Source of the DNA: Oikopleura dioica
Lineage: Eukaryota > Animalia > Chordata
Direction of reading: 5' to 3'
Assembly: GCA_907165135.1 (NCBI GenBank)
Contig: OU015569.1
Coordinates: forward strand, 7,750,001 to 7,814,000
DNA: 64,000 nt
The notes under the pieces are model-generated. The model was not told the DNA's origin. It saw nothing but the letters and a program-made list of their open reading frames with translations, and did no database searches. Made by a program: the position numbers and the translations under genes. The first letter of the stretch is position 1; each line of letters begins with the position of its first letter. This document shows, piece after piece, positions 10,122-40,600 of the stretch.

Positions 10122-11552
10122 TCATTCCTCGAGCCTGTTGATAAGGTCTTCGTTGAAATTGGTGAGTCGCTTTCTGCCAGAGCTAATGTTGGAGTCGATT
10201 GAAGCAAAGAAATCGCTCAGCGATTTGTCGCGAACTTCTTCTTTAACGGAAGCGTCTTTTCTACTCTTCGTTGCTGAATTATCAGCAGCTCCAGTCGACT
10301 GGATGGCTTTCTGGCCAGGGTCATGAAAAATTGGTGGATTCGTGGTGGATTAGCGCTCCTTGCACCTCGCGCTCCACTGCGCCGCGGGGGAGTGAAAGCA
10401 AAATCCACCGCGGCCCGGTGGATGATTTTCACTTTTACCTTGGGTAGTTCATTCCTGCGCCAAGCTTGGAGCGCCCTATTTCCTCGCTTGTGCTTTACGC
10501 ACTCTAAAGGGTCACTCGAAAGTGATAGAGCTCGCCAAAATCTCGGTGGGTGCACTCTGACCTACTGTCCGAAATCAGATGCAAATAATACCGTGTGATT
10601 TACACAAATATATTCCTGGAAGCGAAAAGCTTCCTTTTTGAGAACAATTTCGAGGATTTATAGACTTTTGTTCTAATCGAGCAGAGGTCTTCCGCACATC
10701 AGTAAAAGTATTTCTGATTATTTTTGGTGGCAGCACCAATGTTAGTGGTGGAGAAATGACGTCATCGTCAATTTTCCTATGATTTTAGTGCATTTTGACT
10801 ATCTGGTTTCTCCACCACCACTGATGGTGCTGTCACTTAATCATTATTTAACACACGACAGACCTTCTTTAACAAGGTCCAAAAGAGAGATTCAAAATAT
10901 CTCGACTCTAAGGTACTCAAAACCGCTCCACAGTTGAGGAGCAGTCTTAAAAAAAACTGTTAAAGTAATACTTGATATTCAATAATTTAAAATATTTTGG
11001 AAATGATAATAAGCATTCTTATTTCATATAAAATTATCATGAAGACAATAAATTTCTGAAAAATATATAAAATTTTCGAGATCCACCGGCCCCGGTGGAT
11101 CCACTGGTGGATGGTGGATCGACTATCCACCGGGCCGCGGTGGATTTTGCTTTCACTCCCCAGCGGCGCAGTGGAGCGCGAAATGCGAGAAGCGTTAATC
11201 CACCACGAATCCACCAATTTTTCATGACCCTGTTTCTGGCCCCTTAGAAGTGGAACTTTGATCACTTTTCCGGACGTGAGTTCTGGGTCGTAGCAAAGAA
11301 AGCGATTGTGGCTCTTTAGCACTTCGACTGAAGTTGAGAATTTGATCGCAACGCCAGTGATTGTCTCGCCTGAACGATAGCGTGGGAAGAGTGACGAGGG
11401 AAACTCATACCTTCAGAAACTGCGTAGTCGACGAGATCCACTTCTTTCGCTTTTCCCATTGCAGATCCAAGGTAGGCGCGTTGACTGACTGTTCCATAGT
11501 TTCTTTCTTTGTGCGAACCGAAGGACAGTAAAGACATACTTTCGCCCTCCAT
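10122..11552 (-). CDS. LYSMD1/2: LysM-domain protein (LYSMD1/2-like), coding exon interrupted by a MITE
   Basis: After a 41-nt GT-AG intron (11370-11410): DYAVSEGETITGVAIKFSTSVEVLKSHNRF...KVIKVP (LysM). C-terminal SLSDFFASIDSNI resembles the LYSMD1/2 tail. Frame is continuous once the insertion and one TSD copy are removed. Confidence 0.85.
10316..11232. mobile_element. 917-bp non-autonomous hAT-type MITE
   Basis: About 108-bp near-identical TIRs (10316-10423 and 11125-11232) starting CAGGGTCATGAAAAA. Exact 8-bp TSD TTTCTGGC (10308-10315 and 11233-11240). Subterminal GGTGGA/TCCACC repeats. No transposase ORF. Confidence 0.93.
10727..10836. repeat. Internal ~110-bp imperfect inverted repeat within the hAT MITE
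   Basis: cagcaccaatgttagtggtggagaaa ... tttctccaccaccactgatggtgctg. No clear TSD. Confidence 0.6.
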
Positions 11553-11773
11553 TTAAATTCTCTTAAAAACCTTTTTAAATCGATGAATTTAAAGGCTAAT
11601 TTTAAAACTAAGTTAAAAATATTGGCGATGGCACAGAATTGATCAAGAGATAGGAAGGTTTCAATCACAGCTCGAATTAGAAATATATTAGGGATCATTC
11701 GTTTTAGAAGTAAAGCAAAATTGAAGAAGTAAGGAACATGCGGAGAATTAATCGTGGCAATAATTAATCAGAA

Positions 11774-13201
11774 TTAATTAAATTGGCAATTTTGGTTCAC
11801 AAGTAACGGATTCGTATTTGGATCTCGGCCGAGGCTAAATCCTGAAGAAGTCGGCATGATAAATTGAACGAATGGTTTTGAAAGGTTCTCGCAGCCACTG
11901 CAGGGCGGGGGAAGAGGTGAATTGGCGTCAAGGTAATCGGTTATTGTGTGGGATAGTGTCGCGTCCGCGCAGGAACAAGTCACAGTTGAAGAATCCTCGG
12001 AGAAGAGATAAAACCGGCCGGACTCAGCTCCATCGTCTTTTCTCGGCTTTATAATTGCTACGAATGCGCGCGTGAGCTTTCCTCTTCATCGACTACCGAA
12101 GCGATAATTACTCAAGACCTCGTTATCGAAGTTATAACAACGTGCTTTGTAGTCAAAAAATTATATCGTCAAAGATAAAAATTTTAGCCGGTTTCTTTCA
12201 TTCCAAATTCCATTGCCTGGAGAAGCGCTTGAACGAGCGCCTGAACTCCTAGTTTGCCATTGCCAGCAACGGCGCTCATCCAAAGCTCCCCACCGCGTAA
12301 AATGAAAATCGGGACTTCCAACGACTCGTCATAATGAATTTCCAGGGTTTCTGTCAGCGAGGACGCTCTTAGGAAAAGATCGGGACTGACGATTGAAGAA
12401 GACTGGGAATCTTTGATCGAGGGAAGGAGAAACTCGCTCTGAGAAAAGACAGAAAGCGTCTTCGTCCAGTAAAAAAGCTTGTCGAGGTGGTGAGCTTTTG
12501 CGCGGTTGATCAATTTTATTGGAGATCGTTAGATTGAGTAATTGATTAATACTTTTTTAACCCGTTAACAGGGCACCTCATTTTGCCCTACTGTTAACGG
12601 GTTAACAATAAAAGCTCTCAAATATAGTACATAAAAATCATAATCGAGGAAGAATCATTTTTATTGCGAAAGTAAAGATGAACAATTCCTGCATGCCTTC
12701 TTTCGCGTGTGGGCTCGCTTAAAACGGCTGCCATCGCCTCCGTGAACTCTTGAACGAGAGTCGACTTCGGCCCAAGAATCGTCAGATCGTGTGACTTCAT
12801 TGCGAAGAATTCGAAAGCCGGCTTCTCCGTCGATGTCAAATTCCAGCTTACAGAAGAAAGCGAACTGCTCGAGGGGCATTCCGGTGAAAACGAAGCGAGG
12901 ACTTCTTTGTAGCTCCTAATGTGATTTTGTCAATTCAAAATTTATTTCAAAATTTACATTTTTTGCTGAGGAGGTGGCAAATAAATTCCAGCTTCCTTCC
13001 GAGCATGGTGTCCGAATGATCTGCTAATAGCGCAAAAGGCGAGCAAGAATAAAACACCGTTCAAAGCTAGAAATGTCCTCGATGGTTTGCTTTCCGAATA
13101 TCGCGTTTTTCCATCAAGGGTTTCATAATCGTACCTATTTTAAATGAAGCATTTAAAAAATAAGAGCATTGTCAAAAATACCCTTTGCCCGTTTTCGCCA
13201 T
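11774..13201 (-). CDS. Type II membrane protein of unknown function (multi-exon)
   Basis: Spliced MAKTGKG|YDYETLDGK...TFLALNGVLFLLAFCAISRSF (single TM), then exons at about 12640-12915, 12184-12500 and 11774-12090. Some junctions uncertain. Confidence 0.5.
12561..12601. mobile_element. 41-bp piggyBac-like mini-MITE or hairpin remnant, intronic
   Basis: TTAA|CCCGTTAACAG...CTGTTAACGGG|TTAA: TTAA on both sides and CCC/GGG termini. Confidence 0.6.
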
Positions 13202-14404
13202 TGTTCCCCTCTTCTCTTAGTTAGTTATGCTTCTGTTTTGCTCAGAAGCGTCAATTTCATCCTGAATCCTTTTGCTTATCGAATTTGTCAAGCGGCGATT
13301 GGAGCTCGTGGGAAAATCTCTGCTTTGGGTGGCGATTGGCGATAAATTTCCCAAGTCGAGGCAGAAGAGCGACGAAGCTGACGAGGCGAAAACGCGCGTT
13401 TCTTTTTTAATTTCGCGAAATCCGCGTAATTTTTTTCGCGGCGGCGGAGTTTGCGCCGCTCGCTGCCCTCGGGCGCAAAGGGCCCCCACCCACGCAAAGC
13501 GTCTCTCCCAAAGTTGGACTTAGTGCAAAAATCAAACTGTTTATTCTTTTTTGATCGCGGAAATGTGAAAGAAATGATAAGAAAGAAACAATTCATTGAT
13601 TTGGAACATGCACGAAGAGAAAAAATAGAGATCATGGAAGAAGACGTCGAGTCGCAAAGAAAATAATTGAGGAAGAGGAGAAGGCGATCAGACGTGGAAA
13701 CGGAAGGTAATTTGATTGTTCGTTGCTTTTTATGATTGTCGAAAATGAATGTTCCTGACAGTTTGGGGATTTCGATTTATTGCGCTGGGAAAGAAAGGGA
13801 AACGATGCTAGAATGGCGCCACGCACGTACTAATCTAGCGAGATTATTTACTAATCTCTGCCAGGAGCACTCTCTTTCTAGTTATTTATCTGTCGCTAGA
13901 ATTTCTTTAGAAAGTACAGGATAATCAATTTGATTTTGCGCTAGCCCATTTCCATCTTATCTTCGGGCTACTTATTGTCTCTTTTTGATTTAGACTTCGC
14001 CAGTCCAGACAAAATAGCTTGTCGAAAGCACCAATTTTATTACACGCATTTCTCGATTTGTTTTACTCTAATTGATTAGAGCTAATCTTAATTGCCTGAA
14101 TCATTATTTGATGACAAAAGAGGTTTACGGTGGCTTTTTTCGGAGTCGCGTTGTAGAGACTGTTGCTAAAAATATATTTGGGAACTGCTCTCTCCCCATC
14201 ACTTTCGAGACTCAGTAGTGAATGGAACGTGTATTGTTTGTAGTGAACTGGGTCTGGGCTGCAATGAGTCAATCTGTCTAGCAAGTGTCTGGGCGACGGT
14301 TCTTCGAGGGCGAGTACCAGCGCGCGGCTGCAAGGAAGAGGGAGGGGAAAGGGATCAGCTGATCAGGATTTAAGCGGGGCCTATTTGTTGATGGTGGTGG
14401 TGGA

Positions 14405-14475
14405 GTTTGAGATTGGCTGCGCTTTTGCGTCAAGCTGCTCGGTGTCGGGTTCTAAGGCGTGATTGGTCGGCTGAC
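14405..14475. promoter_or_regulatory. Paired CCAAT (NF-Y-type) boxes in a GC-rich putative promoter upstream of EAF
   Basis: gattggctgc (14411) and gattggtcgg (14461), 50 bp apart, in GC-rich intergenic DNA. Confidence 0.4.
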
Positions 14476-14625
14476 GAGCTGCTCTGCCCGCTCGCGCGCC
14501 TCAAAGCACTTTTCCCGTCTTTACTGAAGATTTAACACTGAGTGCGTTGAGCAGTTGTTAATAGCAGAGAGTGATTATTATGGTGTTTCCTTGGGACGGA
14601 AAAGGAAAATGGGCGGCGAGCACCG

Positions 14626-16315
14626 ATGCGCAGCAGCGCCACCCCGAGCCGCAATAACAGAATAACGCATATTTCTTTGAATTTTATGTATTCGCTCAGA
14701 AATGCGCCTTTCTCTCTCCCATATCTCGGTCCAAGGTGTCGTCGCTGCACTTTGTCGTTTGTTTTCGCACCTATTGAATCAGAACGCGCCGTACAAGCTG
14801 GACAAAGCTTTTACGAGAAGAGCCAATGTCACATCGTCACAAAAAAGTTCGTCCCCACATCCATCATCAAGGACAAAGAAGGCATTTTCGGAAGGGCTGA
14901 GAGTTCTCTGTTGTTTCTCCTTCCCCTATTTATACTTCCTTGTGAGCGAGTAAACGAGTTTGATAATCCGCGTCTTCTTGTCATCTTCAGTCAACTTTAA
15001 CTGTCTCTCTGTTTAAGACGAGAGTTTCTATTCTGTTTCGAAAGAAATCACCTCGGATGACTCGCATAAATCAAACGATTCGGTTATTTACTATTTCAAG
15101 GAGCTATTTTAACTCTGGTAGATGGACTTGGCCGAAATTTATTATTTTGCAAAGGTCATCGACACGAGAAATTCAACGAAACTCAGCTTCAGCAACGATT
15201 AAATTACATAACTCAAATTTATAAGATTTTGTACTCGCCTTAGCTAGGTGACAAAGTAGCCCGATGATTCGTCTCTTACTCGCTATGAGTGCATAGGAAC
15301 TCCCTTCTTAATCGTGGATAATAAAGATTCTGTTGTAGCACGACGAGGACATGTCTATTTTTCTCCGCGACGGAAGTTAGAATTATACTAAAACGAGAAT
15401 TTTTACAAGAAATCAACACTGAGAAGCGAGAGCTGCACATAAAACTGCCAAAAAAGAAAGATGATTCCTATGAACCTATCGTCTTTTCCGGTTTTAAAAC
15501 AATTATCTAGCTCTGAGTGGTTAATTAAATATATTTTAGGGGAGTTTCGGCAACAGGAGGGGAAGCAGTGCCTGATCATCGTTGATAAGCAAACCGGACA
15601 GATCACGCTGGAGAAAGTCACTTCCAAAAGTCTGGTCGGGCTGACACGAGAAACCGTCATTGAAAAAATCCACTTCAAGGATAAGGAGACTCCTCGCGTG
15701 CCGACACCCGATCAGGCTTCGAATCGCTCTGAGCCCAAGCGATTAAAATTAGGTTCGTAATGGATCCTCTAAATTAAATTTTCAATTTATCGAAACTACA
15801 CTCCATCCAGTAACCCATATCGACGTGCCCAAATGACGAGTATTTTCAGAAGAAGAAGCGTACTCCCGCGATCCTACGCCGAAGAATGTGGAATCCCCGC
15901 CGGACATAATCTTCCCTTCAAACGGCAAAGAAAACATGCCTATATCTGGTTAGTCTTTCGTTCCGCTAACATGAGACTGGGCGCGATAGAAAGCTGGAGA
16001 CAAATCTGTTCAGATATGACCACATCTGGCACGAGCGACGAGAGCTCTGATGAAGAGAACTCAGATAAGAGATCGTCTGAAGATTCCGACGACTCATCGG
16101 ACGACTCTTCCGACGGGACTTCAAACGCTTCTGATCCACTGGAGGACCTAATCGCCGCACCGAATTCCACTACCTTCCAGGAAAAGATGACATTTTACTA
16201 TCTGAACATATTTTCCTCTGAGTCACTAGTTTTTGTCAATTTATCGAAAGCCCAACCAAGGAGACCTGCAATTCGGACAGATTGGGCTCGACTTGTCCGA
16301 GAATTCCGAGTCTGA
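14626..16315 (+). CDS. EAF1/2: ELL-associated factor (EAF1/2-like); boundaries approximate
   Basis: GQSFYEKSQCHIVTKKFVPTSIIKDKEG and GKQCLIIVDKQTGQITLEKVTS match the EAF N-terminal domain. The Ser/Asp-rich exon at about 15900-16200 fits the acidic tail. Confidence 0.7.
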
Positions 16316-16529
16316 CTGAAGCGACAAACTCAACGGCAATTTCAACATTGACACAAGCCTGAATTATATAGTTATTTCTTCTCAAAACCCTACTGATCAC
16401 TTCAATCACAGATTGTGCAATACTCAATCATTGGATGCAATATCAATCCGCATGAGACTAACTTGAGCTTGTTTTAGCCTGGAAACCCAAAAGTGAAAGT
16501 TCCTACAAATACACACACCCGTCAGGGTT

Positions 16530-20928
<4,399 letters not shown>

Positions 20929-23059
20929 AAAAACACTTTCTCTCACTCTCTTGATCTGAACTTGTATGATAAATGATGTGAACAACCTGTATGTCATAAC
21001 AACAAGTCGGATATCATACTGTATGATATGGTTTGCTGGGAACTCGATTGATTACAACTTCAAATTTCAACTTCGAATCAAATCAGCCTCCCCCAAAAAT
21101 GGCCCTATCCAGTCCTTCTACCAGACCTTTCTCTACTACTGAATCTATCACTACTACACTACTTACCACACAAGTCCGTCTTACTTGTAACAACGACATC
21201 AAACCAGAAGTCGAAATACACCCTTCGACAAGGCATTTCAAAGTTCATTATTTTTAGTGTCAATTATTTCGTCACCTTCGAATAATTTATTCTGGACCAG
21301 AATTTTTGCTAATTGACAATACCAATAAGTAGCGATCAAAGATCTTATACAAAAGCAATTCTCTTTTAATAAATGCGTAAAGAGCGCAAAACGCACTCCC
21401 ATTGAAGAACATCTATTGAAATATATTGTTTTCAACTCAACTAGGAATCGTTCTGTTCATAAAATTGTAATTTGTAAATATTTTGACGGTGTGCATTTTA
21501 CTAGTTCTAGTCCTGAAGACGCTTCTCAAGCTGGGTTTCTCGTAGCTATACATTCGTGATTGCAAATCAATAGCAACTCATACTGGTTATCTGCAGGTCC
21601 TCTTCTTCCCAAGCATATACATTGATACTACTTTTCAACAGCCAAACAACTCTCTTGTCGACGTATACAGCATATCTTCACTGAAAGATCATTTTGCTCC
21701 TGGACCTCACGCATAGCCGCAGGGCGGTTACTTCAGCTTTAAGGTTATGATTTTCGGTTAAAACTTTAATTTCAAACGTACGGATGCTTATTATCAGTAT
21801 GTGGCTGTGTCTCACGAACGCGTTTAATGAACTCGACTATCGTCTCGAAATTGCCTGGTTGTCTTAACATCCCTACAAGTGAATATACACATGAGTTCCA
21901 TGCTTCCTAATACTTCATTTTTTATACAAAATACGTTTTTGTAAGTAGTGTCGTCGTTCTCCTGCTGCGATTTCGAGCTTATTAATTATTGACAGAGGTT
22001 CTTTTCAACATTTCCTATTCTAGCGATGGCTTTTCCCTACGTGCCTTTATCCCAAAAAGCTCCTTTTTCCCCGAAAATAAAACTAGAATAATACATCTAT
22101 TCGTACATTTTCCACTTTTACATTTTTCATCACTGACCTGACTGACTCTCTTTTTGTTCTTACTTTTCTTTTTGTTTATATATATCTAGCGAAGCTTTCC
22201 GTCTTTTGCTCATTTATATTTTGCAAACAATTTCGCGCGTTTTTTTTTAAATTATTTTTTTTATTATTAAAAAAAACTATCTTCGTTTTATTCGTTTTAG
22301 ATTTTATTTTTACTCTTTCACATATCTCGATGTTATTAATTTTGTAACGGCTTCCTCTGACAAATTTGGACATTTCATAAATTCAGTGGAGATGATATAA
22401 AAATGCGGAACTAGCCTTAACAATCTATTCCTAATTAGTTTTGGCGGGATCTTCATCTGTCACCGGTACCTCATTTACTGTAGTTCTTATTTTGCCGTCG
22501 ATGATTCCCCGCGGCCCTTATTCGACCACCTATCTAGGTGAAACTTTCTTTGAATTTCCTTTCCTGGTACGCGAATATCACTACTGATTATTGCTTAAGT
22601 TTAAATCACCTCCTACTCCCTCTGCTCTGTTCCCTGGTTAAGTGATTAGCGATTATTTATTTATTCTTTTCTAACGGCTGGTCCGTGGCCTTCTCACCAC
22701 AATTGAACTTGTCTACAAAACTAGGACTCGCAACAGATTTTCAGTCTGTTCTAAATCTGTTTTAAACTTTCGAGTGTCAACCAACATTCAACTGTAAAAA
22801 CATACCAAGAATAACTACGAAAGAACGCACCGCTAATCCAAAGTTTTTCTTTAGCCATGATTTTAAAATTACAGCTTTTACCACTCAATAAATTCATCGT
22901 CTGCAGCATGGCTGTCGATTTCGAGTCCTTTGAAATCGACAGCCATGGTCTGCAGAGACAAACACTACCAATGCGTTTAAACGAGGTTTTGTCTTTGATT
23001 CTGTTTTCCTCTAATAGAAAAGAGCTGACTGATCATCCGTTACTTATTACAGATCAAGA

Positions 23060-24433
23060 ATGCCGACGACATTGACGGAGATTCTTGAAAGATGGGATGG
23101 TAGTACTGGCGAGCACAGAAAAAACATACTCAAGGAATGGTCTCTTTCGTAACTTTGGAGCTTTTTTGAAGCGAATCAACACGGTCGAGAATTGTAAATC
23201 TAATCTCCAGATAGTGACCTTCAGTGGAGCGCTTTATCAACATCTCAAAGGATCTAACAGCAGCAGACATTGAAAATGAGCTGGGTTCGTGCGCGCATTT
23301 AATGTTCGCCCGACTAGTGGCCAACTTTCGCATGCGATATACGAAGGGCAACTGTAAAATGATTCTCATCGCAATCAGTCGCTTTATTCATCCAGTCGGT
23401 GGACTCGAGTTTGTTGACGAGCTTCTGGATTCAGCCGCCATCTTAACCGTGCTAGAGATGATCTCCCTGAAGAAGACATCGGATGAAGACAGAATCCAAG
23501 GCGTCGATCTTTTGCAGTGTATCTCCGAAAACGGCATTCAGGCGAAAGGTTTGCATCCTCTGCCGGCGGCAATCTGTTCTTAATTCTGCTTCCAGAAATT
23601 CTCTGCAAATCCGGTTGCATTCGCGTTATCTGCGAAGCATTGGCAGTGACCGAGAATGCTGAACTTGTTGAAAAAAGCCACAAGTTGTTGGTGGGTATCT
23701 CTACTGGCAACCCAAAGTATCTTTCACACGTGTATCGGGCTTTTATCGCACTTCTTCCATGTGACTCGCCAGGCGCCGTTCATCTAGCGCTGCGTATGTT
23801 ACGCTCTGTTCAGTACGAAGTGGAACCCATTAAAGAAATAGCAGCGCCGCTAATACAATACGGATTTGGTTCGATGCATGGAGAAATTCGCTACGAAGCT
23901 CGTCATTTGGCTCTCGACCTTCTGAAGACTGATATTGCTCCGCATATTTACCAGGCGATTTATAAGGCAATGATAGACTGCGAAGAGTGGATTACCATCA
24001 ATTTCGTCAGGTAAAAAGGGCTGTTAATGCCGTCCAATCGTAAATTCAGACAAGGCAGGCCTGTGCTGTCAAGATGATCGATGAAATCCTGATGACTTTC
24101 CCGGAAGAACATCTTCAAAAAGTGCTCGTCGAAAAATGCATTATCGGGAGACTTTTACTCACGCTAGCTTGCGTCAAATACAAGGAAACACAGAAAAACT
24201 CAGCTCTTGCGTTATCAACGCTGGCCATCCGTATACCATCTGGTTTGATCGCTTACGTCGTAATTTGCGATCAGTTGAAATTTTAAGTAACGCCTGTAAT
24301 AACCAGCTCTCTCGGTACTCTCGCGGAACATTTCCCAGACGATGCAAAAATGATCTTCACAAAGATGACGGAAGACGAGGCAGAAGCTATACGCACAATT
24401 GGAAAAGGCATGCTCGAGGGACAGCAATTGTAG
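23060..24433 (+). CDS. ARMH1: Armadillo-like helical domain-containing protein 1 (C1orf228-like)
   Basis: ILERWD...RKNIL, HLMFARL and GNPKYLSHVYRAFIALLPCDSP match recalled ARMH1 motifs such as [22 protein letters not shown]. Confidence 0.8.
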
Positions 24434-24681
24434 TAAAATTTCCTACTGAAAAGGAAATCAGTAATATCTCCTATTTTCTATATTCTGAAACTATATTTTT
24501 GATATATATTCTATTTTTATATAAAATAAACAGAGGAAAATGTGTATATCAGAGAACGCTTCTTCGATTTATAGAGTTTTGCTTTTGGGAATCCTAATTT
24601 CAGGATAACCAGGCGGAATCTGAAAAACCGCAGAAGAAGAAAGAGTATTTTTGCTATGCTTAAAACACTACTTCTTTCAGA

Positions 24682-26097: not shown

Positions 26098-26195
26098 TAT
26101 CTTTATTCTCAACCTATCCTCACACTGCCCTTCATTTAAACATGTATTTAATTCTCACGTAGTTTTACAGGAACCTTTTAAGAACCCGCACTTTT

Positions 26196-27071
26196 ATGTC
26201 TACAGGCGAAGGCGATCAGCGCCCTTTAATCGCCGAATTCGACGAGCGCGACTCGGTTAGCTACGAAGAATTCGGCGGCACTCAAGACTACGTTAACTGT
26301 CCCACTTGCCAAGGCACTGGCAGGATATCCAGGTGGTGTCTCTTTTTCACTTTCGAATTATACATAAAAAAGCTCGACTTCCCAACAACTTGTGGCGCTC
26401 ATTCCATATGACGACGATAGGCTCAAACCAAAAAAGACTGCCATGTATGTTACTCTTGCAATAAGCGGCGCGGTCTTCGTTTGTGGTCTCATCGCCGGTA
26501 TGCTTGTCTACTTTATGATGCCAAGGCCTGTCGAAATCAACATGATCGGGGTAAAATAGAATCTTCAACCGGGAAATAGTCACGCAAACATTTAGCTGGA
26601 ACGAACGGGCGCTGATTTTAATCCTGAAACGAATTCCTTGGCGATGAATTTTACGATTCCATTGTTAGCAAAAAACCCAAACTATTCGAATGCGAACTTG
26701 ACATCGACCGACGGCACCGTCAGCTTTATGACATCTCAAGTGGGAAAAGTAAAGGACAAGCGGTTTCACATTTTACCGTCGAGAACGACGGAATCTTGGC
26801 AGAATGTGACAACGACTATTATCTTCGACCAGTCGAATCATCTTCAGTGGATTTACGAGTGGTGCCAAGTAGGCGCGACGAAGGTACTAGTTGTCGTTTT
26901 AAGAAGAAATTCCATGAAATTATTTAGATTCTTTCACTAACAATACATATAAATGCGAATGTAACGGTTCGCGGAACTGTGCAGCAAACAGCCATCCAAC
27001 AGCTTTGCTACGTTTCGTGCGATCCAGAGAACAGGGACAGCCGATCCAACTGTAACTACTCACCTTTTTGA
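26196..27071 (+). CDS. TMEM106: TMEM106-family protein
   Basis: CPTCQGTGRI, QLVALIPYDDDRLKPKKT, a TM segment, then a lumenal LEA-2-like region. Confidence 0.92.
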
Positions 27072-27221
27072 GATTGATTAATCTTTATTGGCCCTCACTT
27101 ATAATCGGACTCTGTGTCTCCGAATTCCAAACTCTTTCCCTATGTACAGTTCAATGAGACAATTTCTTCATCATTCTACTTCTTTTTCAAAGGAAAGCTT
27201 TTTTCAGAGGTTTTGCCGATA

Positions 27222-27761
27222 ATGGTCTTTGTCGAAAGGGAAAAGTTCCTTCACTCTATGAACCGTATGTTCCAGAACAATCGAGAGGGGACTGTACGAA
27301 TGTCGGTGAAGCCATACGATGGACAGGACAGGCCAATGCCTAAAGATGGAAGCAAAAAGAAGTGGACAAGTGAAAAGCTAGTCCTTATAAGGGTAACATC
27401 GATATGAATTATGTAACATAATTTATGTTTCTAGAGCTTTATTATTGTTCCCTGTTGCGGAATTACTTTTTGCCCTTTATTCAGTATGAATTAAGTTATT
27501 GATAAGCACTCCTCGTATGAGTTTTGTTGTACACCAGTATTGTTGAACTCAAATCTGATGTGTTTTGATAAATATTCGCTGTATCTCTAGAACAACATTT
27601 GCTTTTAGTTGACGTCGGAGAAGGAAAAAATTTCTACTGTGGTAGATGAAGAAAATATGGGCGATTTTTCTGTAGAGTACTGTAAACAACTTAGATCGAA
27701 CATGAACTGCCTCCCCAAAAGACCGACTCAGAAAAAGAAGAAGAAGACGACAGACAACTAG
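27222..27761 (+). CDS. SRP14: Signal recognition particle 14 kDa subunit
   Basis: MVFVEREKFLHSMNRMF...VKPYDG...LVLIR|LTSEKEKISTVV...LRSNM followed by a Lys-rich tail; two coding exons. Confidence 0.9.
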
Positions 27762-28083
27762 GTACTCACTAATAATAAGTAACTGGCTCCAACAGTGTAT
27801 ATTTTAGAAAGCTCTTCCGACTCAAGCTGTGACTACCCCCTCTTTTCTTTCGTCTTTTAACATTTTCTAGGACTTTATAATTAAATCCGATCTTTATAAC
27901 AATTAATGTTGCTTTTTCTTTCCAGTCTGCTTTTTAAAAGCTGTACAGGTCGCTTCATTCTTGACAAATTATTTATGTGAATATCTCTTTCGAGTGCAAT
28001 CTAAAAAATATCGCCTTCGCGCGTGCTAACTCCAATCTATCATCTCTCTTTAGAGTCGGTCCATCAATAGATTCGGTGTTGAA

Positions 28084-29211
28084 ATGAAGGTGCGTGATGC
28101 CGGACTCGAACGTTGCCGGACCGATTTGCATCTGACATCGACTGGGAAAGCCCATTACTACAAACCAGTGAACTCCTTTCCATCACCATCATTCCGTGAG
28201 TAGTATAAGTTTTTCCCTACTGAATATTTATTAAGATCAGCGCGCGTTCGATCCGCTGCCTGCTGGACTTTTGAAAGAGCACCTTAACCCTGCCCGACGC
28301 TTCGAAACGACATCTGGCTCTTTTCATAACAAAAAAGCGTCGATTCCTGAACTTAGAAATCCAATCTACCAAAAAGCTCCCTCCTCAAGAAGAATCCAGT
28401 ACATGTCAAATACATCAGACGCAAGACAATCTCATAATAACCATTTCTAAAGAACGTCTAGGTATTGAATCAGCATCACACACGCACTTTCACGATGGCT
28501 GACCGAACTTCAGAAAATGCAGACAACTACCAAGCTCATCCAGTTTCCAGAAAGCACATCGTCAGCGGTATCCCAAGGCACAAGTACTTGAAGGCAAAGA
28601 AAAACACAGATCAAGGATTTGTGTTTCCCTCTGCCGATTACCAGTCGACAACTATGAAGGACTTTAGACGATACACAGCGTACGTTAACTTTAATCACAC
28701 TTTTATATTACTCAAGAGATTCATTTTAGGTCTGAGCAAAAGAGCAACGGGTCTGGAAAAGAGAATTTGACTTACTGGGAGGCAGAAGGATTTCCGAAGG
28801 TTTGAACTAGTGTTTGATAGGCATGTCTTAACTATTCCTAGGTCTGGGGCTACGGATCTAACGAGAACCGAGCACTTGTCAAAGGAAGAGACTACAAACC
28901 TGGTGTAAAAATGGAAGACGCATTCATGGGTGGGTGCAAAATCATCTCGAGAACAATCGTGAGCCCAAAGCGAACTGTCCCAGTCAAAGTACCAAATAGA
29001 GGTGACTTATCTTCAGATTTACAAGAAAGTTACGTTTTATCCGTCAGGTGACACCTCAACGTCAAAGGAAGACTACGTAAGACGCGTCAACCCTAATGAC
29101 CTTTTGCCTGCTTCACTTTTCTTCAGCGGTGGCAAGCGTCGACGCGGACACTTTTCTGACTTCGGCGGGTACACTGTTGAGTCAGACAGGATCGGAAGCA
29201 TGACTAGCTAG
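28084..29211 (+). CDS. Hypothetical low-complexity protein (multi-exon)
   Basis: Spliceable reading MKVRDAGLERCRTDLHLTSTGKAHYYKP...FETTSGSFH...YQSTTMKDF...STSKEDY. Recurrent (S/T)Tx(K/R)xD(F/Y) motifs are reminiscent of ciliary microtubule-inner proteins (inference). Confidence 0.5.
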
Positions 29212-29502
29212 AGAACGTTTCGGGTTGATTTACATGCAAAAGTTCTTTGTTTCAAACTATACTCTCTTATATTTTTTCACTAAAATAAATATATTTTTGT
29301 AATCTGTTTGTCATTTCTTCTATATAATATCCGAATCATCCAAATTAGATACAACGAGTTTGTGGCTGGGTGCAACTCTTATTGTAACTTAGCGCTTCCA
29401 AATATTTCTGTCAGGGAACATTTATTCCCTTGCGAATGCGTAATGTCCCTATTCAGATCTTGTGACTGTTAGATAGGGCTTTCTGCTGTTTCTTAGTCGA
29501 GA

Positions 29503-30360
29503 ATGCCAGGGTATGAACCATTATCAGAAGACGCAAATGAAGTCCTAAAAAATGAAAGCCCGCTGGAAAATGCTGAACCGTCAACAGCGGATAAATTGTC
29601 AATCCCGATACATACCGAAGATCCCACCTTCGCGGATCAATTACAATTAGGTTAGCTCACATGTGCTGATTTACGATAGTAGCCGTGTTGGTAGCAATCA
29701 TTTCTAGTGGTCTTTTTAACCATTTGTAATAGATGAGGAGCCAGAAATTGGCATCTTCGAACCAAACGATAGAAGATACCTTCTTTATTTCTGCTTGAGC
29801 TTTGTCGGCTTTAAAAGTTGTGTAGCATGGAAGTAAGTCGAAATTCGTGTTACCGCGATCGAATTAGGATTATTAAGGACAACGAAAACCTATTTTTCAC
29901 AGGATATCAACAGTCCTGGTTTGCGGTTCATAGTTACTGGGTTGGCTGTTTTGTTTTCGCGGTTTGTTGTTATGTGCATTCACTGGTCAGTCCTTGGTCG
30001 ATTCCCTGTTGAATTTATTCTACCCGACGCCGTCTCGCTTCCAATCTTGTATTACGAAGATTATGGCAAATCCAAATGGAGAGCGATCGAGGCTTTTTCA
30101 TTCTTGGAATCGCTTTTTGAATTGGCTCTGCTTTTGCAAATCTTTCTCCTAAGACGACGCTTCACCATGTTAGCCCAGAAAGGCTTAAAAGTGGCCAATG
30201 ATATATGGATCGGTAATTTCATTGAATTTAACTCTGCTTTAAATTTTTAGATATGTGTTTGGTCCTGTGTTGCCAATACTGTGCATTAGCACAAACACTC
30301 CGCCATATGGAACTACGCAAAAGCACAGAACCTCGTCTTCAACTTCAGACAGTTTGAATC
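29503..30360 (+). CDS. Multi-pass membrane protein of unknown family
   Basis: ATG at 29503 with an acidic N-terminus, then several hydrophobic exons (VAVLVAIISSGLF; FIVTGLAVLFSRFVVMCIHW; LFELALLLQIFLL). 3' end approximate. Confidence 0.5.
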
Positions 30361-30905
30361 AGCTCGTTTTGTTTAAATTAAAGTACGGAAAACAATAAGC
30401 CCAGTAACATAAGCCCATTATCTTGATTTTTGACTTTTGGGAAAACTTTGCGGGAGTTTAAAAAATCATATAAGACTACTTTGCTCCAGCATATCTCCGC
30501 AACTTTTCGAACTCATAAATCCTCACTGCTTCAAATTCTAATTCGACCCGTTCATAAGCCAACTTATCATTCTCTTGCTTTACCGTTTATTTGCCTCTGT
30601 GAATTATCTCTCTTCAAATTGAACTTGTTAAAAAGCCTTCCCCTGAAAATTGTCCTCAGCCTTCCAAAATAACTTCCAATGACTTCTTTCTAACATGCTT
30701 TTCATTCTTATCATAAAAATTTTCTGCCGTGCAATGCCTAATAAATATGAATGATCACAAATCAAGCAAAAAAAAAAAAAAGAAAAAATAAAAATAAATG
30801 TTTTATTTTTAAAGATTTAAGCTTTTTTTTTTTGCAGGACAGGTATAAAATTGCTTCATAAGAAATACGATAAGAAAAGAGGTTCTTACCAAGAACTTCT
30901 GAGTC

Positions 30906-31470
30906 TCATAGCTCGTCGTCTTTGTTCTCTTCTGTATCGCCTTCGGTGTATTCATCAGTTTTGTCCTCGGAGGTTGTTTCAAAATTGTCCCTAGGAGTTT
31001 CTTCCTCGTCATCTTCATCAGGAGTGATAGGCCAGCGTGAATGATTTCCGATGACAGAGCTCACGTGCTTCACAATAGAAAAGCAGATTTCCTTGTAATC
31101 ATTTTGTTCTTCGATCAGTTCCGTTTTGAGGATTTCCAGATGTTGATAGATCTCAATGATTTTATCCCATGACCTTATCTTACGGTCTTGCAAGACCTTC
31201 AACTCGTGCTCGTATTTCTTTTGCTTTTCTTTCTTTTCGATGAAAAGCTCAAGGTAAAGCTCGGAACATTCTTCCAAAACATGACGGCGAAACTTATTTT
31301 GCCCCAGGTAGGTTTCATTGTCGATTATAGCGTCGAATTTTCTTTTGAGAGATACATATTTTTCGGTCACATTCAATTTTGTATTGCTCTTCACTCAGGT
31401 CCGCCGTATTTACTTAGAATACCGAACACAGATGGCGCCAAGCTACGCCTTATAACAAGGTGCTCGAGGT
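30906..31470 (-). CDS. Coiled-coil protein with acidic tail, unknown function
   Basis: 162-codon open frame rich in E/K heptads with a D/E tail. 5' exon uncertain. Confidence 0.55.
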
Positions 31471-31971
31471 AGAAATTATAACCTCCAACATCCCGCTGAG
31501 AGTAGTAAGTTCAAGGTGTGTGATAAAAATCATTCGTTTTCTTAGTTACTGGCGAGATTTAGAGAACACATCGCTGAATGCCTGTGACGTGTTATTTCAA
31601 TATGCTGCTGAACTTTTAAGATAAGAGCGAAAATTTATGAGCCTTTATTTTTGTCATGAGTAAAGCCAATTCGTCCCAGTAGAGGCATAATGTAATCTTT
31701 GCAAAAAATCTCTAAAAATTCGATAATGTCGCGGTCGGCAATTAGTGATGACTTTATTCTACTAAATCTGTTTCGAAATCAGTGAAAAACCGCGAAAAAA
31801 CCACCACCAATATATTGGATGAGGATGTCTAGTCGGCGCCACCAACCGGTTAGAAGTTTCCGGACACGCGCTAGCTCCGAACAAAACTTAGCAGACGTTC
31901 AGAAATTGAGTGCTCCATTGAATAGAGAGGGAGCCGCAATCAGCAGAGAAAAAAAAAAGAGATTTTTTATC

Positions 31972-33409
31972 ATGAAGAGAAGCAGCTTTCTTGCACTTGG
32001 GTGCTTGTTTGTTGCGTCACTTGGACAAGTTATCGGTTTAAATGAACCTTTTTAACGCTAAAATTCTGGGTGTCACTGACCTCATACTTAATAATCAAAG
32101 CAAAAGAAGAAATATTTGAGCCCTGAAAAGACATTTTGCCTCTGGATGAGTATATCACGCAAGTGTCCTTCCCAGAAGAACAAGAAGCACTGAAAATGGA
32201 ACTTAGTCGTTCAAATTCACTCTTCAAATTCGGAGATACTCGCGATATTCTTTACAATATGCTTTACTATCAGTTTTACGTGAAGAGAATAAACCTAATG
32301 CCCAAAGATTTCCTCCAATATGGATGTCAATGTCAGGGCCGGATTCCAGAAATCAGGAATCCCAATAAATGATAACACAACTGTATTTCAATTTCTTTCC
32401 ATATATTTTACTCGTTTGGGACAGATTTTAGCTTCAATGACGAATTGAAGTTTAGTTGAGCTTCGAACCACCGACTAGTTTTGATAGTTGTGGAACCGGA
32501 AACAGATCTTAAGCTCATCCAACGTGGGCGCCGCTAAGGACCCTCTTGACAGAAGCTGTGTGGACTGGCATCAGTGTCGCACCTGTGTCTCACTGGAGAA
32601 GACTTTCAAGGGCTGTTCAGAGATATTTCTAGATATAATTTTAGAATAAAGATAAGGAAATTTTGAGTATAGAGTTGTGCAGCCCGTTGAAGAATGATGA
32701 AGAGTTCTGCGACCCTCTTTCACAAATGTACCCGATCGGAGTCAATGTCACAAATGGAGAACTGTCCTGTATTTTGACAAGTGAGAATTGCATTTTCTTA
32801 TTATGATCCGTTCTAACATTGATGTAAGCTTCTAACTGCCAGAAGACAACATGTGAGTGCGACGTGAAACTTGTAAATGGATTGGTACGCAACATCGACT
32901 CGTTTGATCAGTCCCGGTATTAGAAGAATTCTTAGCATTGAAATAACAGGAGATATTAAGCGTTCTGGGCTACAATTATGACCAAAAGCGACATTGTAAA
33001 CGTAGTAGCAGAGACCCAAATGAGGAAAGCAGTGATGTTGAGATGCCTCAAAACGATATGTTTCGAATGGAACTTGAATCGCTCGCATTTGATGATGTCA
33101 ACAACGAGGAGCAGCTGCAAAAGAATCAAGCTCGTCCGAACAGGTCCAACTTAAGTTAAATTTCTCGACTGACGTATATATTTTAGAAAGTTATCATTCA
33201 ATCCCAGCAAAGGAACACACGACATTTGCTGCGGTGATTTCCCCAATGTCAAGTCGTTCAATTCTTTCGGAGGTCGCCGGGCTTGCTGTGCAAAGTACGT
33301 GATTGAAACAAGAACTTTAATTATGTATAAACTTGTTTATAGCAACGTTTACGACATTCGAAAAAATGAATGCTGCGATGGATTGATCAAGCAACTCGGA
33401 TCCTGCTGA
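31972..33409 (+). CDS. Secreted phospholipase A2-fold (otoconin-like) Cys-rich protein, probably non-catalytic
   Basis: Signal peptide MKRSSFLALGCLFVASLGQ; FLQYGCQC; KDPLDRSCVDWHQCRTC; TCECD; C-terminal CCGDFP...RACC...YDIRKNECCDG. Confidence 0.7.
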
Positions 33410-36400
33410 GTATTTGATTCAAATTGTAAGTTTTGGTCGTTTTTAAAAGCTTTTTATAGATAAAACGACAGGAAAATATTTCCTGATTGTACTTTTCATT
33501 TCTCATTTTCTGCTGATCTTGGACTTTTCTGTTTCATTGTAAATAAAATTGTCAAATATATCGTTAAATTGCGTTAGTTCGTAAAAGTATGGCATATCTG
33601 CTCGCGTGAAAAGCCACATCCTACTCATAAAAGATATCCAAGTGGGAATTTCAGTAAAATGAGTCAAATTGTACTCTTAACGAACCATAAAGAAACTGAT
33701 CCATCATTTCTCGCACGATTCGGAGAGGATAGAAAGCAACGACAGCAAAGGATATGATTTCGATACTCTAATAATAAAAACGCAGTTTTAGAGAAGAATC
33801 TCCTGAAATCAGGTCAATTGCAATGATTCCTTCTGTCGCAGTCAAGAAGAGTTGTGAGCACGATAAGTGTAAAAAGACCGAGAGAAGGGGAAGCCTTTAA
33901 ATGTTATAGATTTCTTTTTTTTTTTAAGATTCTACCTTCAAGAATTTTGAACTTCTCCTATAATGATATTAGAACAACTCCTAAAGTTACCAACCCACAA
34001 TTTCCAGAATTATAAAACTGCGCGAAAGTCGCCTCCAGGAAACCTTGCTCTCTATATTACTAAATGACCTTTTATTTGTGGTCTAAATCTTTGTTTAGTG
34101 CGTTTCAACCGTAAAAGCGTAGTACGATTTTATAGTTTTTCGGCATATTCAAAAAGGAACTCAAATTTTTCGCGCCTAATAGTAGATTCCCCCTTGACTT
34201 CAGTCCGGCATGTTATGTGAGTCTTGATAAAAATGGAGTTTGTTAGTGAACATCAGAGCAGAAGTTATCACGATTACGAATTTTTATATTGCCATCGTAA
34301 ACGTCTTGCGCTATCAGAAGCGTACTTGCTAAACTTGATGAGCCGACCGTCGCTACCTCCAGAGAAGCTATTGATAGAATCAACTTTCAGAATTGCAGAA
34401 ACTTTTCAGGCAATTAGTTAATCTTTTAATTTCGAAATTCATTCTCAAAGACTATTGGTAAAAAGACCAAAACTTATTTTTAAAGGGCTTGATAACTTGC
34501 TCAATAATGAAATGATTATGCTGCGGCTCAATTTTGATAAATGATGACTTTTTCGATTTCCAGTAAGGATACAATTTTGTCGTAAACTTGCCATATCGAT
34601 GGGGTGTGCATCTGAAGATTCCTCTTTTCGGCTTTTCTTGACATTTTTCTCAATTTTCCTCTGCCCGTAGAGATGCATATTCTTTTCAAAGAAAAAGTAA
34701 CGAATAAGAAAAAATCGAGATAAAGCCATGAATTCGAGGATGGCGCGTGCTACAACAATCGGTACGTGTGTAGGAGTGCCGGTTTTCAAAAATTCTTACA
34801 ACCCCTACGAATACATGTGACCTATAAAGATTTACAATTTTTTTTTCGGGAAAAAATTCACAAGAAAGCCGCCGAGTGCTCATGATCGAACTGATGAGAG
34901 CTACTTCAAAAAGAGCGATCTTTAGCTATTTCACTCTAATTTCTATTTTTTATCAGACGGGCATAAACATAAAAGACCTTAAAAAACACAAACCAATAAA
35001 ATCCGGACGTAAATGTAAATAAAACAAGAGTAACTCAAATTAAGAGACATTAGAGAGAAAGCCTACCGAGGAAAAGTAAAGACGCAGACTGTGATGAATG
35101 GATTGAGCAATGAGTACCCCGCTGATGAGGAGAAACTTGCGTCGACTACACCGCTCCTGCAGAAAGAGTGCCTAAGTACCGGATATTCCTATTCTCAAAA
35201 CGCATTGGTTCTTTAGAATAATGACTCTTTTAATATTTGATTCTTAGTAATGGGAGTTGAAAGAGGATGTTTTAAGTGTTGAACGCAAGTAGAAAACGAA
35301 GATAAGCTACGTCGTAAAAGTTAGGGACGGTGAAGCGATCTTCAAGGAATTAATCGACTTCCGCAGAACCACTAAAACATAAAGACGTACCTCCCGAGGT
35401 ACGGCTATCCCATCGCGCTTTTTTCATAGGGCGTGCGGCTTACGGTATTTATGGGATGCATAAATCGTTGATGATCATGTTGGTCCAGTCTTGTTTTATT
35501 TGAAAATAGGTCTGTCGATGTTTAAAAGGTCGCACAGAATTTTTAAAGACTTCAATGTGTTAATTAACTTTATGATTTCGAACCTAACTAATAAATGTCC
35601 TTTTCTGATATCCAAATCACTGATTTATTCTCATCAACTACCATATACAAAAACCTATATCTTCAATTTCTTTTATTTGAACTCAGCGATAAGAATAGCA
35701 TGTGAATATCCCAAAAAGTTCGCAAAGCAACCGAGATGAGCTAGCACTACAAAAAATTGGCAATTCGGAACTTCAGCTCATCTATGACAGGCCGGATACC
35801 AGGATCGTGGGCATTTCCGGAGAACACAGGAGCAGCTGGCTACCTGCTCCTTTTATTAAATTTTTATGATTACTTTTAATTGACACTTTGACTTGACCCT
35901 ACCCAAAGAGCGTTTAATGCAATTGTTGATGATATTAGATATCAAGAAACTTAAAATCAGAATCTTCGTATTAATCTCCTGATTTTGATGGATACCTTCA
36001 AGAGATTAAGAAGTCTAGATGAGCTTAAAATTAACCTCGCATTCTTCTGATTGCCTTGCGGATCAAGATCGTCCGCGGTGCCGTAAAACTTCCCGCCATA
36101 AATAAAATTGATCTCGGTACCAAAAAGTTTCTCAGCACCCAAAAAATAAGAGTTATTAAGCGTTTTTTTTTAATCAGAGTTTGCGCAAACACTCGAAATT
36201 CACGGTGATTTCTTTTTGCGTGCGGAGCGCCGTAAAATCAGAGAATTATAAGACCGCAATTCTGGTGTACGTCGTGTACGCAATCTAGACGATATCGTAA
36301 ACTAAAAATATGCGTTACTTGTAAACTTTAATCATGCATCAGGTAATAGTATTACCGTAATACATAATGTTGTGGAAAATGTGGATATTTTTAAAAAGCA

Positions 36401-37045
36401 TTCCCGTTTCTTTGAATGTTTAGATCTCTGCGAATGGTTCAGTAAGAACGCCCAGCATAAATAGATATCTCAACAAATATAAGAAAGAGTTTATTGAGTC
36501 GTTCTCTACAAGCAAAAATCCGCTTTAGTTAATTAACACGAGTTTTCGTGTAGTCGCACCAGTTAGCACTGCTTACTTGGCAGTCTTGATATTCGTGCGC
36601 TAGAATTTGCTAGCTTCGAACGAGTAATGAATTCTGTGATAAGCGTGGACTCGGCCTGTGTTTGACATTGATAAAGTGAGTCTGAGATCGATCAACAAGT
36701 ACTGACTGCTCGATTGCTAACGGGGAGGACTCAAAATCCCAAAAATTGAGATTATGTCACGACCGCCCGGTCGCTGAATACATCGGCAGCACTGGACACA
36801 GAGTCACGAGCAGAAAAAAATCTCTTCGGGGTTTTCTTATTTTTAAACAAACTCATGAAAAACACAGAGAAAGCAAAATGGCATCCTCAAGAATTGCCCA
36901 GAGCGGGATTAGGGAAATGGCTGATTGAATAGCGAAATATAATCTTGGATTTGGATACTAATCCCACAATTTTTAAGCCAAAATTTGATATCTCGTGTTC
37001 CTTGATACTTCCATTCCGAGTATTTCAGCATTTTTCTTTTGAGCC

Positions 37046-38760
37046 ATGAAAGAAATAGTAGAGCAGCTTAGTGGAAATGCCTCCTCAAGAATAAAGATAA
37101 ATGTGTCCGGAAGTCATTTCGAAACAAGAAGAAATACGCTGGGTAAGTTATTAAACGGTATTACGGGAAACAGTAAAATTATCGAAATCGTATTTCAGCA
37201 AAGCGAAAGGATTCAAGACTTTTCCAAATGCTCGAGGATCATTCGCTCGCTGATGGATTCGAAGTCGATGAATTCGGTGTGGAGACTTATTATTTTGATA
37301 GACATGCTCCGTCCTTCCCTTCTATTTTGTATTTTTACCAGAAGAATGATATGAATTTGTACAGACCGTTGGACGTCCCAATGGGAAGGGGTTTTTATTC
37401 AACATTCTATTTAAAGACGCTTTCCGCTTGTGACTATATAAACCCTGGCTGAAGAAGTTTTTGTGGAGGAAGTTATTTATTTCAAACTGGCACATCACGT
37501 TTTGGAAAATGAATTCGAGGATAAAATAGAGGTCGAGCACCGCACGCTCTGTATAAATTCACGAAACGCAGTCTGGGCCGTCTTTGAGAAGCCAGAAACG
37601 AGCAAGTTGGCGAAGATTGTAAATTTTGTGTCTATATTCTTCATTCTTGTTTCTACAGTTTCATTCTGTCTAGAAACTCTCCCGGCCTTTCAGTCTGAGT
37701 GCGAATCAGTAAGCAATATAAACGAGACTCTATACCGACATCAAGACTGGTCGCCAAAGAGGTAATCTACCCGAGAAGCATTAAAGATAAATAAAACATC
37801 TCTTAGTAAAGCATTCGGCTTTTGGATTATTGAGACCACCTGTATCGGCTTTTTTACGATAGAGTATATTCTCAGGCTTTATGCGGCTCCTCGACGATGG
37901 CCATTCGAGAACGGTCTATTTTTGGATCTAGCTTTTACTAAAACGCTTAAACTAATATGACCCTGTTAAAAGTTAAAGATTTCATGAACATAATTGATTT
38001 GGTGGCAATTTTGCCGTATTATTTCGTGATGACATTTAACATTCGCCTCGGCACAAATGGTCCCATTCCATGCGTTCCAGAAGGAGAAGAGGACAGGCAA
38101 GTACACACTCTTGGTACTCGTCATTCACAAATTATATTACAGTTCGGGAATAGATGGCAAGTTTCTAACAGTTCTCCGAGTCGTTCGACTGGCCCGTATA
38201 GTTCGGATTGCCAAACTATCGAGACACAGTCGCAATCTCAACACGCTTATCAAAACATTTCGACAATCTCTGCGGGAGCTCAGCTTTCTCATGCTCTTTT
38301 TCATCGGTTAGTTGGGCACTTATCTAAATCTTGTCTCTTCTTATCGTCACTTTCAGTATCCATGGTTTTGTTTGCGACGTTCGTCTTCTTTTGCGAAGAA
38401 GGCGAAAATGATTTCAACTCGATTCCGCACTCATTTTGGTGGGCGATTGTGACGATGACCACCGTCGGTTACGGCGACATGTATCCAAGAACAGGGCCTG
38501 GCAAAGTCGTCGGCTTTCTCTGTGCCATCTGTGGAGTTTTATGCATCGCTCTTCCAGTTCCCTCGATCGTTTCCAACTTCCATCGGTTATACCAGGTCAG
38601 AAATACCAATGCCCAAAATAGAAATCAACAATAATCATTCAGGAAGACCAGATCATGAATCCGCACGGGGACTACACTTACAAAGACGATGACGAAAAAA
38701 TTAGATGCAAGGTAATATAATATTCTCTCGGAAAATATAAAAAACACTCTTTTTAGCTAA
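37046..38760 (+). CDS. KCNA-like: Voltage-gated K+ channel, Shaker/Kv1-like
   Basis: T1 domain ([10 protein letters not shown]; [10 protein letters not shown]); S4 [18 protein letters not shown]; pore [17 protein letters not shown]; S6 [11 protein letters not shown]. Includes a GC-AG intron at 38097-38142. Confidence 0.95.
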
Positions 38761-39175
38761 GAAAAAAGTTCCTAAACGACGTTTGAGGCTCAACTTTTTC
38801 CGTCTGAGACTCAGTTTGAAGAAGTTTGTTTCTGTTATTTAAATATGTGAATATGCAAGAATCAACAAAAATACATATTATAACGATAAAAACAACACAA
38901 TAACGAAAGCGCTTCACTGGCGTTAAAAATCTTCCAAACGCTATTTTTGGCGTTTTTATGTAAATTCATAACTTCAATTTTCTCGCTGTTTACACGGAAT
39001 AAACCTCCTTATTGTCAATTTTATCCATGCTACTTCCCTTTCTTCCTCGATGAAGCAGTCTTTGGAGCTTGGCGGATAGACGGGCGGGACTTTTCCGTCT
39101 CAAACAGAAAATTCTCTAGATCAAGTCTCGACAACTTTCGGTGTTTTGTTTTTTTTTGGACAGTAAATTATCGAT

Positions 39176-40600
39176 ATGAGCAGATCAAGGAAGGGCGAGA
39201 TTGCGCTAAATTTGAGTGAAGATATTCAGTTTCCGGAGGACTTTCGCTACGTACAAACGAATAATGGTAAGCTGGACCAAGAAAGAACAGGATATGTTTT
39301 TTTTAATTTAAGAGGTTTACCGAGTCAGAACCCTCTTTCGATTGCACAGTAACCCAGTGACAGAAGCAGGGCTGGATATTTTGAAATCAGCAAAAATTTC
39401 AAATCAATTTTTGTGCGAAATCTCATTTCTATCTCAAAATTTTGCACCATCTCAACAAATCTCAAATTTCAATATTATTGCAATTCCCTCGTCATATTTT
39501 TTCCATTCTTGAGATTGCTGAGATCTCGAGATCTCAAATCTCAAAATTTTGCAAACCGCGCAAGGGCCGCGGACAAACGTCGCGGGCTTACAGCAAGACT
39601 TGTGATTGGTTCAGATCGGTCTGAAATGCTTGAAATCTCATAATCTCAAATCTCATTTCATTTCAACGCGTGTATCCAACTCACGCAGTTTTCTGAGATA
39701 ATTGAGATCTCAGCATTTCAAATATCATTTTTTTGCAAAATCGAAAATTGAGATCTCAGACAGAAAATTTTCTGAGATTGCATTTTTGAAATGGATGAAA
39801 TGATGATTCATGTTCTTTTCGGGGTTTGAGATTTTTGTTGATTTCAAAATATCCAGCCCTGGACAGAAGGGATACTCGGTATTCGTGGTGTCAAGAAAGC
39901 ATTCATCACCGACGTTCGATTACTGTTCGCACGACTTCTTTTCAAAAAGCTCAAGAATGTTACGAAACTCGAATTCAAGCACACTATTATAAGAATAAAG
40001 GTTCGTCGTAATTTATTTCTAAAGGAATTTTTTAATTTTTAAAAGGAGAAAGAATGGCAGTCGAAAAAGTCCTACGTGAATCGCGACACGAATGCACCCT
40101 TGAGAACCGCAGCGAAGTTTTTAATTGTGATGGAACTCAAGGAAGACTCATTTGAAGCCTTCGTCGATAGCGATCGAATCTACAGGAAGGGACGCTATCC
40201 AATCATGAACGACGAAGATGGGGACTTCGGGTAAGACTACGCTAAAACCACCTTTGTCTAAGTACGTAGGGACGAGATTATTATACCGGACAGCTTATCT
40301 GACGAGGATTCAGCCGGTTCAGCTAAGACTTGTCTAAACCAACCTATCAAGAAGGGCCAAGATCTGAAGAGAGAGCACTCAAGAAGTTCCTTCGCCAGCC
40401 CACCGAAAAGACTCATTCTTGAACCAGCGCATTCTCGCACATTTATCTCACGTCCAAAGACATCAGATCGTCTTCTCTTTCCAGGTGTAGAAAAGCAACG
40501 ACCTCGCAAAAAAGAGCCGACAGCCAAGGTTGACAAGTCGAAAAAGAAGGGCAAGAAAGAGAAGAAGGAGAAGAAAGAGAAGCCATGTCTGCTCATGTAG
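39176..40600 (+). CDS. Hypothetical protein with Lys-rich C-terminus; second exon interrupted by a MITE
   Basis: Four exons splice in one frame: MSRSRKGEIALNLSEDIQFPEDF...VTE/GILGIRGVKK...KEWQSKK...DEIIIPDS...KKGKKEKKEKKEK. The frame across 39367-39861 is restored by removing the insertion and one TSD copy. Confidence 0.65.
39367..39861. mobile_element. 495-bp non-autonomous hAT-type MITE
   Basis: About 37-bp TIRs CAGGGCTGGATATTTTGAAATCA... Exact 8-bp TSD GACAGAAG (39359-39366 and 39862-39869). Many subterminal AATCTCA/TGAGAT repeats. Confidence 0.93.

Follow-up and report, generated by a model that had tools for sequence, protein, structure and literature searches.

Two different non-autonomous transposons, apparently of the hAT superfamily and here called E1 and E2, interrupt coding exons of two genes in a 64-kb stretch (the window, meaning the whole of the DNA analysed) on the X-specific region (XSR) scaffold OU015569.1 (GCA_907165135.1, 12.96 Mb) of the larvacean tunicate Oikopleura dioica. 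E1 lies in a gene for a small LysM-domain protein (gene 1) and E2 in a gene for a conserved Oikopleura protein (gene 2). The evidence tips the balance slightly towards young insertions of two different miniature inverted-repeat transposable elements (MITEs) into exons of the Okinawa lineage, which would leave the transcripts disrupted and would involve no dedicated splicing rule. The initial annotation of the window had proposed that both elements are removed in frame by one shared rule with GG-AG borders, and had presented them as a candidate introner system.

The elements were delimited by inspection of the sequence together with a scan for duplications. E1 (917 bp, 10316-11232) has CAGGG...CCCTG ends, is without a long open reading frame (ORF) and is framed by exact copies of an 8-bp target-site duplication (TSD), TTTCTGGC, at 10308-10315 and 11233-11240, which on the coding strand of gene 1 reads GCCAGAAA; its inverted arms (10316-10423 and 11125-11232) measure 108 nt each and are 94% complementary. 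E2 (495 bp, 39367-39861), likewise ending in CAGGG...CCCTG and without a long ORF, lies between exact 8-bp copies of GACAGAAG (39359-39366 and 39862-39869) and has inverted arms of 37 nt each (39367-39403 and 39825-39861) that are 95% complementary. The hAT signature consists of an 8-bp duplication and the end motif YARNG; both elements display the exact 8-bp TSD and CAGGG...CCCTG inverted ends of the YARNG type, and by these features they are classed as hAT-type non-autonomous elements. When the window was scanned for any exact 8-bp duplication around inverted ends, with at least 12 of 14 end positions required to match, E1 and E2 were the only matches, while 19 of 20 shuffled controls gave none and the remaining one gave a single match. 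Letters and scan thus confirm the two unrelated, CAGGG-ended elements with exact 8-bp duplications that had been described. A looser scan of the window for more elements with 8-bp duplications returned extras at noise level only. There is no further copy of E1 in the 64 kb, and the terminal 22-mers of each element occur in the window nowhere except at its own ends.

The grouping of E1 and E2 into a single family was rejected, as they have no common sequence past the terminal CAGGG. Their subterminal repeats differ as well, with GGTGGAT occurring 12 times in E1 and ATCTCA 18 times in E2, whose interior also contains GAGATCT beside these repeats; such distinct repeats are what the binding sites of different transposases usually look like. 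With their 8-bp TSD, CAGGG end, short subterminal repeats, absence of a transposase ORF and precise empty sites, both elements have the common features of Ac/Ds-like hAT MITEs, among which E1 stands apart by its unusually long arms. The Ac/Ds end itself begins CAGGGATGAAA. The interior of E2 (39496-39848), though not its flanks, is matched at 93-94% identity by contigs from two plankton metatranscriptomes (X1 and X2), and at about 94% similarity these contigs imply that other copies of the E2 MITE family exist; their presence in RNA libraries reflects either transcription or DNA carry-over. Eight matches of the E2 terminal 20-mer in JGI metagenome contigs were discarded as chance, all being bare 20-23-mers without the remaining element.

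Orthologues and empty sites attest that the exons split by E1 and E2 are truly coding, and the interruption of reading frames that had been claimed is thereby borne out. Gene 1 occupies 10122-11552 on the minus strand (ATG at 11552, stop at 10124-10122) and encodes about 149 aa; its exon 1 (11552-11411) and a 41-nt GT-AG intron (11410-11370) precede exon 2 (11369-10122), which contains E1 directly past the LysM domain, between ...LLRGQK and AIQST.... Orthologues of gene 1 are uninterrupted at this point, and a marine metagenome contig from a diverged relative (L001, 88-90% identity) has an empty site, at which the 8-mer stands once; E1 appears to be at least lineage-specific. In a TARA metagenome contig from a lineage about 78% identical (L002:760-838), the LysM frame leaves that of all other orthologues directly past ...KGQ, only a few bases from the E1 site, and meets a stop 12 codons on, with 60 nt of contig remaining; this could be another insertion, an intron or plain divergence.

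Gene 2 (39176-40600, plus strand, about 263 aa) has four exons, 39176-39266, 39313-40000, 40046-40230 and 40270-40600, of which the second contains E2 between PVTE and GILG. These are separated by GT-AG introns of 46 nt (39267-39312), 45 nt (40001-40045) and 39 nt (40231-40269), whose removal is seen in RNA. The gene 2 orthologues P0009 and P0011 are gap-free at the E2 site, and together with P0002-P0005 and P0007 they have neither gaps nor extra residues at the E1/E2 sites. The product of gene 2 is uncharacterised, Oikopleura-specific and without a Pfam family. Its C-terminus combines a lysine-rich (polybasic) stretch with a conserved CaaX box (CLLM here, CFVM in the orthologues), which suggests a prenylated membrane-associated protein. 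A public OKI2018 model of gene 2 was not recovered by profile search among proteins of 121-387 aa, and looking up a neighbouring ORF did not retrieve it either.

Empty sites, which the initial annotation had proposed to seek by comparing haplotypes, are available for both elements, in the diverged relative's contig L001 for E1 and, at much closer range, in three ENA marine metagenome contigs (L011-L013) for E2. These contigs encode P0014, an ORF found by profile search that reads from exon 2 of gene 2 through a retained intron 2 into exon 3; because it keeps this intron, P0014 is genomic. They are 96.5-97.6% identical to the window, colinear with it over 37179-39366 and from 39863 onward, and have a single AACAGAAG at the E2 site. 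The wild DNA recovered from this lineage thus lacks E2.

As for RNA, two plankton metatranscriptomes contain gene 2, and no RNA run is listed as containing gene 1. A contig of 723 nt from X1, with two mismatches, spans exons 1-4 of gene 2, with all three GT-AG introns gone. At the E2 site it joins 39358 to 39862, skipping 503 nt, which amount to E2 plus one TSD, and giving the empty-site form PVTEGILG. Because 8 nt fit either side, this joint can be placed in several ways, with borders such as AA..AG, CA..AG and AG..AC but never G*..AG. No contig joining exon to E2 was present in X1 or X2, and ORFs running from exon into E1 or E2, sought by exact look-up as signs of other carriers or unspliced RNA, were not on record. 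Raw RNA runs labelled O. dioica (X8 and X9) placed 0 and 1 reads on gene 2, too few for a test. Most simply, the X1 transcript would represent an empty allele of a near-identical haplotype, in which case the E2 insertion would be very recent. The GG-AG junction predicted at 39370-39866 fares poorly here: the only contig that spans the site, perhaps from a non-carrier, skips 503 nt and not 497.

Since E2 is missing from every wild sequence recovered, DNA and near-reference transcript alike, it is most likely a segregating insertion. The OKI2018_I69 genome was assembled from a single male, XSR denoting its X-specific region (PMC8008620), and its origin in this one male of a laboratory culture would account for the capture of E1 and E2 in the reference. 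On an X-specific scaffold of a male donor both interrupted alleles are hemizygous, and thus the only copies in a mature animal. In carriers, the transcripts would most likely be disrupted or heterogeneously spliced at cryptic sites, leaving weak or null alleles of two genes dispensable to the male. Several points weigh against this explanation. The male hemizygous for both insertions nevertheless matured, which would be easier to explain if the RNA were freed of the elements. The X1 transcript differs from the reference haplotype at only 2 of 723 positions, as against 15 of 723 for the empty DNA contigs, and a carrier allele could be its source, whether the element was removed exactly or reverse transcriptase jumped from one TSD to the other. 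Further, L011-L013 are possibly re-assemblies of one sample.

The supposed rule itself starts from sound arithmetic. With a slash marking the cut, excision from CAG/GG in the inverted end to CAG/ in the downstream TSD leaves 6 extra nt (two codons) and no stop in either gene, through a hypothetical intron of 919 nt in gene 1 (10311-11229, minus strand; product ...GQK-QK-AIQ...), which is seen in none of the data obtained, and one of 497 nt in gene 2 (39370-39866, plus strand; product ...PVTE-AE-GILG...). The figure of +6 was therefore calculated correctly, but its recurrence in two genes is no independent coincidence, because it follows from CAG at positions 1-3 of the end and AG at positions 4-5 of the TSD, whatever the phase of the gene. 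Nor does in-frame removability mark out a special element, a criterion that we rejected on finding about 30% of all donor-acceptor pairs to be in frame: of the G*-AG pairs lying no further than 40 nt from the junctions, 24 for E2 and 36 for E1 keep the frame and meet no stop. What does exceed chance is the likeness of the TSDs, which have the same letter at 6 of 8 positions when read on the coding strand (P ~0.006 for random 8-mers of the window; 0.011 in either orientation), and AG at any of the three in-frame TSD positions in both elements has P ~0.03. If hAT transposases prefer similar targets, this similarity needs no selection, and two cases cannot decide between preference and selection. 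We regard the shared pattern, (T/C)TTCTG(G/T)C, as most likely reflecting such a preference of related hAT transposases, and CAGGG as a generic hAT terminus; given both, the same hypothetical +6 excision would arise automatically and no dedicated splicing rule would be needed.

Among the alternatives, the one that survives best, though we think it unlikely, is that carriers remove the elements through other sites, partially, gene by gene and by no common rule. For E1 the candidates are CAGG/GT...AAAG/, a canonical option that adds 3 nt (one extra Gln), or a host GT upstream (-30 nt), and for E2 another cryptic pair. In-frame canonical options of this kind exist by arithmetic, but joining the GC of E2 to either AG near by puts the product out of frame. 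The host-donor option has a counterpart in the public AUGUSTUS model of gene 1, OKI2018_I69.XSR.g15555, whose protein P0006 was found by a LysM protein search and implies an intron at 10311-11265 (minus strand) joining the host donor AAA/GTGATC to the TSD CAG/. This model drops ten residues, VIKVPLLRGQ, which form the last strand of the LysM domain, and its Pfam LysM score accordingly is 15.0 bits, below the cut-off of 20.9, as against 21.6 for the orthologue P0003. The model may be ab initio and no evidence of real splicing, gene 1 being in no listed RNA run, and it is probably an artefact of the E1 insertion. It shows, moreover, that the annotators' RNA hints imposed no GG-AG intron.

More doubtful is the general proposition that Okinawa O. 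dioica routinely tolerates exonic hAT MITEs, their CAGGG ends and TSD supplying non-canonical splice sites (GG-AG or neighbouring registers), and is thereby making new in-frame introns now. Its specific form, in which the spliceosome of carriers cuts at CAG/GG in the inverted end and at the downstream TSD CAG/ so that both elements are nascent GG-AG introns, we consider improbable. It draws on the stop-free products in both genes, on the TSDs being more alike than chance and on the maturity of a male hemizygous for both insertions. It also fits the host in part, as about 11% of OKI2018 introns are non-GT/AG (PMC8008620) and the exonic CAG before the proposed donor matches the conserved exonic AG upstream of O. 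dioica GA-AG donors, which also have a downstream A at +3 (PMC7072748). As far as sequence compatibility goes, the borders of G*-AG introns (G at +1 behind an exonic AG, and a closing AG at the acceptor) are readable in both elements, but E1 and E2 lack both the A at +3 and the short length: 1) position +3 of the proposed donor is G in E1 and C in E2, not A; and 2) at 919 and 497 nt the introns would be 10-20 times the median of 49 nt (PMC8008620). Two further obstacles are that one base downstream of the GG donor lies a GT (E1) or GC (E2) that would compete, and which with the first AG leaves +7 nt and a frameshift, and that donor, branch region and pyrimidine tract are all buried in very stable predicted stems of the pre-mRNA, of about 39 bp in E2 (z-score -8.8) and more than 100 bp in E1 (z-score -23). 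The junction is, besides, not the one found in the sole spanning transcript contig, which may come from a non-carrier. On balance, a shared GG-AG rule does not appear to be the most likely fate of these transcripts.

A precedent of another kind comes from Fritillaria borealis, likewise a larvacean tunicate, in which, according to the accounts of Henriet et al. 2019 given in PMC11282704 and PMC13326754, introns derived from MITEs have inverted ends and duplications at their borders, and exonic MITEs are removed by an adapted spliceosome, proposed to neutralise exonic transposons in this way, at AG-AC/AG-AT borders. Duplicated U2AF subunits have been proposed to explain this border usage (2026 paper, PMC13326754); the non-canonical introns of O. 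dioica, in contrast, are G*-AG. That the X1 contig records an exact 503-nt skip from a carrier allele, by hairpin-assisted non-canonical excision or by a reverse-transcriptase jump between TSDs at the base of the stem, is highly improbable: the 8-nt ambiguous joint can be written as AG..AC after exonic GAC, recalling the mostly AG-AC/AG-AT introns of F. borealis with their exonic TAC (PMC11282704), X1 carries almost the reference haplotype and the E2 stem is very stable, but empty DNA alleles exist and are a simpler source of the joint, X1 and X2 hold no exon-E2 junction contig, E1 in the same register reads AG..CC so that there is no common rule, and exact excision is described in the review PMC11282704 for F. 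borealis only, no O. dioica report having been found.

The scheme proposed for E1 and E2 is the same mechanism as that of the introners of Micromonas, Aureococcus and other lineages; in Micromonas the donor lies in the inverted end of the element and the 3' AG is co-opted from the duplication (PMC11282704). Introners, however, are families whose numerous copies have been shown to be spliced out of unrelated genes, whereas the window has two families with one copy each, which does not sustain the label of a candidate introner system; here, too, the GG donor is non-canonical, E2 is missing from all wild sequences recovered and the splicing is hypothetical. Another parallel is the maize Ds element, with CAGGG/TAGGG ends, which Wessler and colleagues, from 1987 onwards, reportedly found to be spliced from wx and adh1 transcripts. 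When donors in the terminus of an exonic Ds are used, some nucleotides of the element are said to stay behind and the allele to remain partly functional, and the splicing, reportedly shown with cDNA, is said to be usually leaky and heterogeneous. For E1 and E2 a comparable removal is hypothetical.

Two further features lie beside gene 2. Just downstream, a 590-bp element (41098-41687) has inverted ends of about 40 nt starting GATGAATG and a 4-bp duplication, AACC; it is missing from the wild contig L011, where AACC is single, and by these features it is classed as a further recent insertion, by a transposon of another type. Just upstream, a 225-aa ORF (37957-38634, plus strand) has the potassium-channel pore signature TVGYGD and resembles a portion of a voltage-gated K+ channel gene.

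As it stands, the window documents recent hAT activity and insertion into genes, and it shows users of the OKI2018_I69 reference that an insertion can distort the public gene models, g15555 being at least one such case. Were carriers to splice the elements out, these would be segregating transposon-born introns on a hemizygous chromosome of a culturable chordate, and the birth of an intron could be traced allele by allele by comparing carriers and non-carriers. The scheme itself is already known from introners, and the value of such a case would lie in its being polymorphic and testable. It would link the unusual G*-AG introns of O. dioica to hAT termini, and, if such tolerance is routine, would amount to a live, polymorphic system of intron gain in a chordate and one source of the many G*-AG introns of the species.

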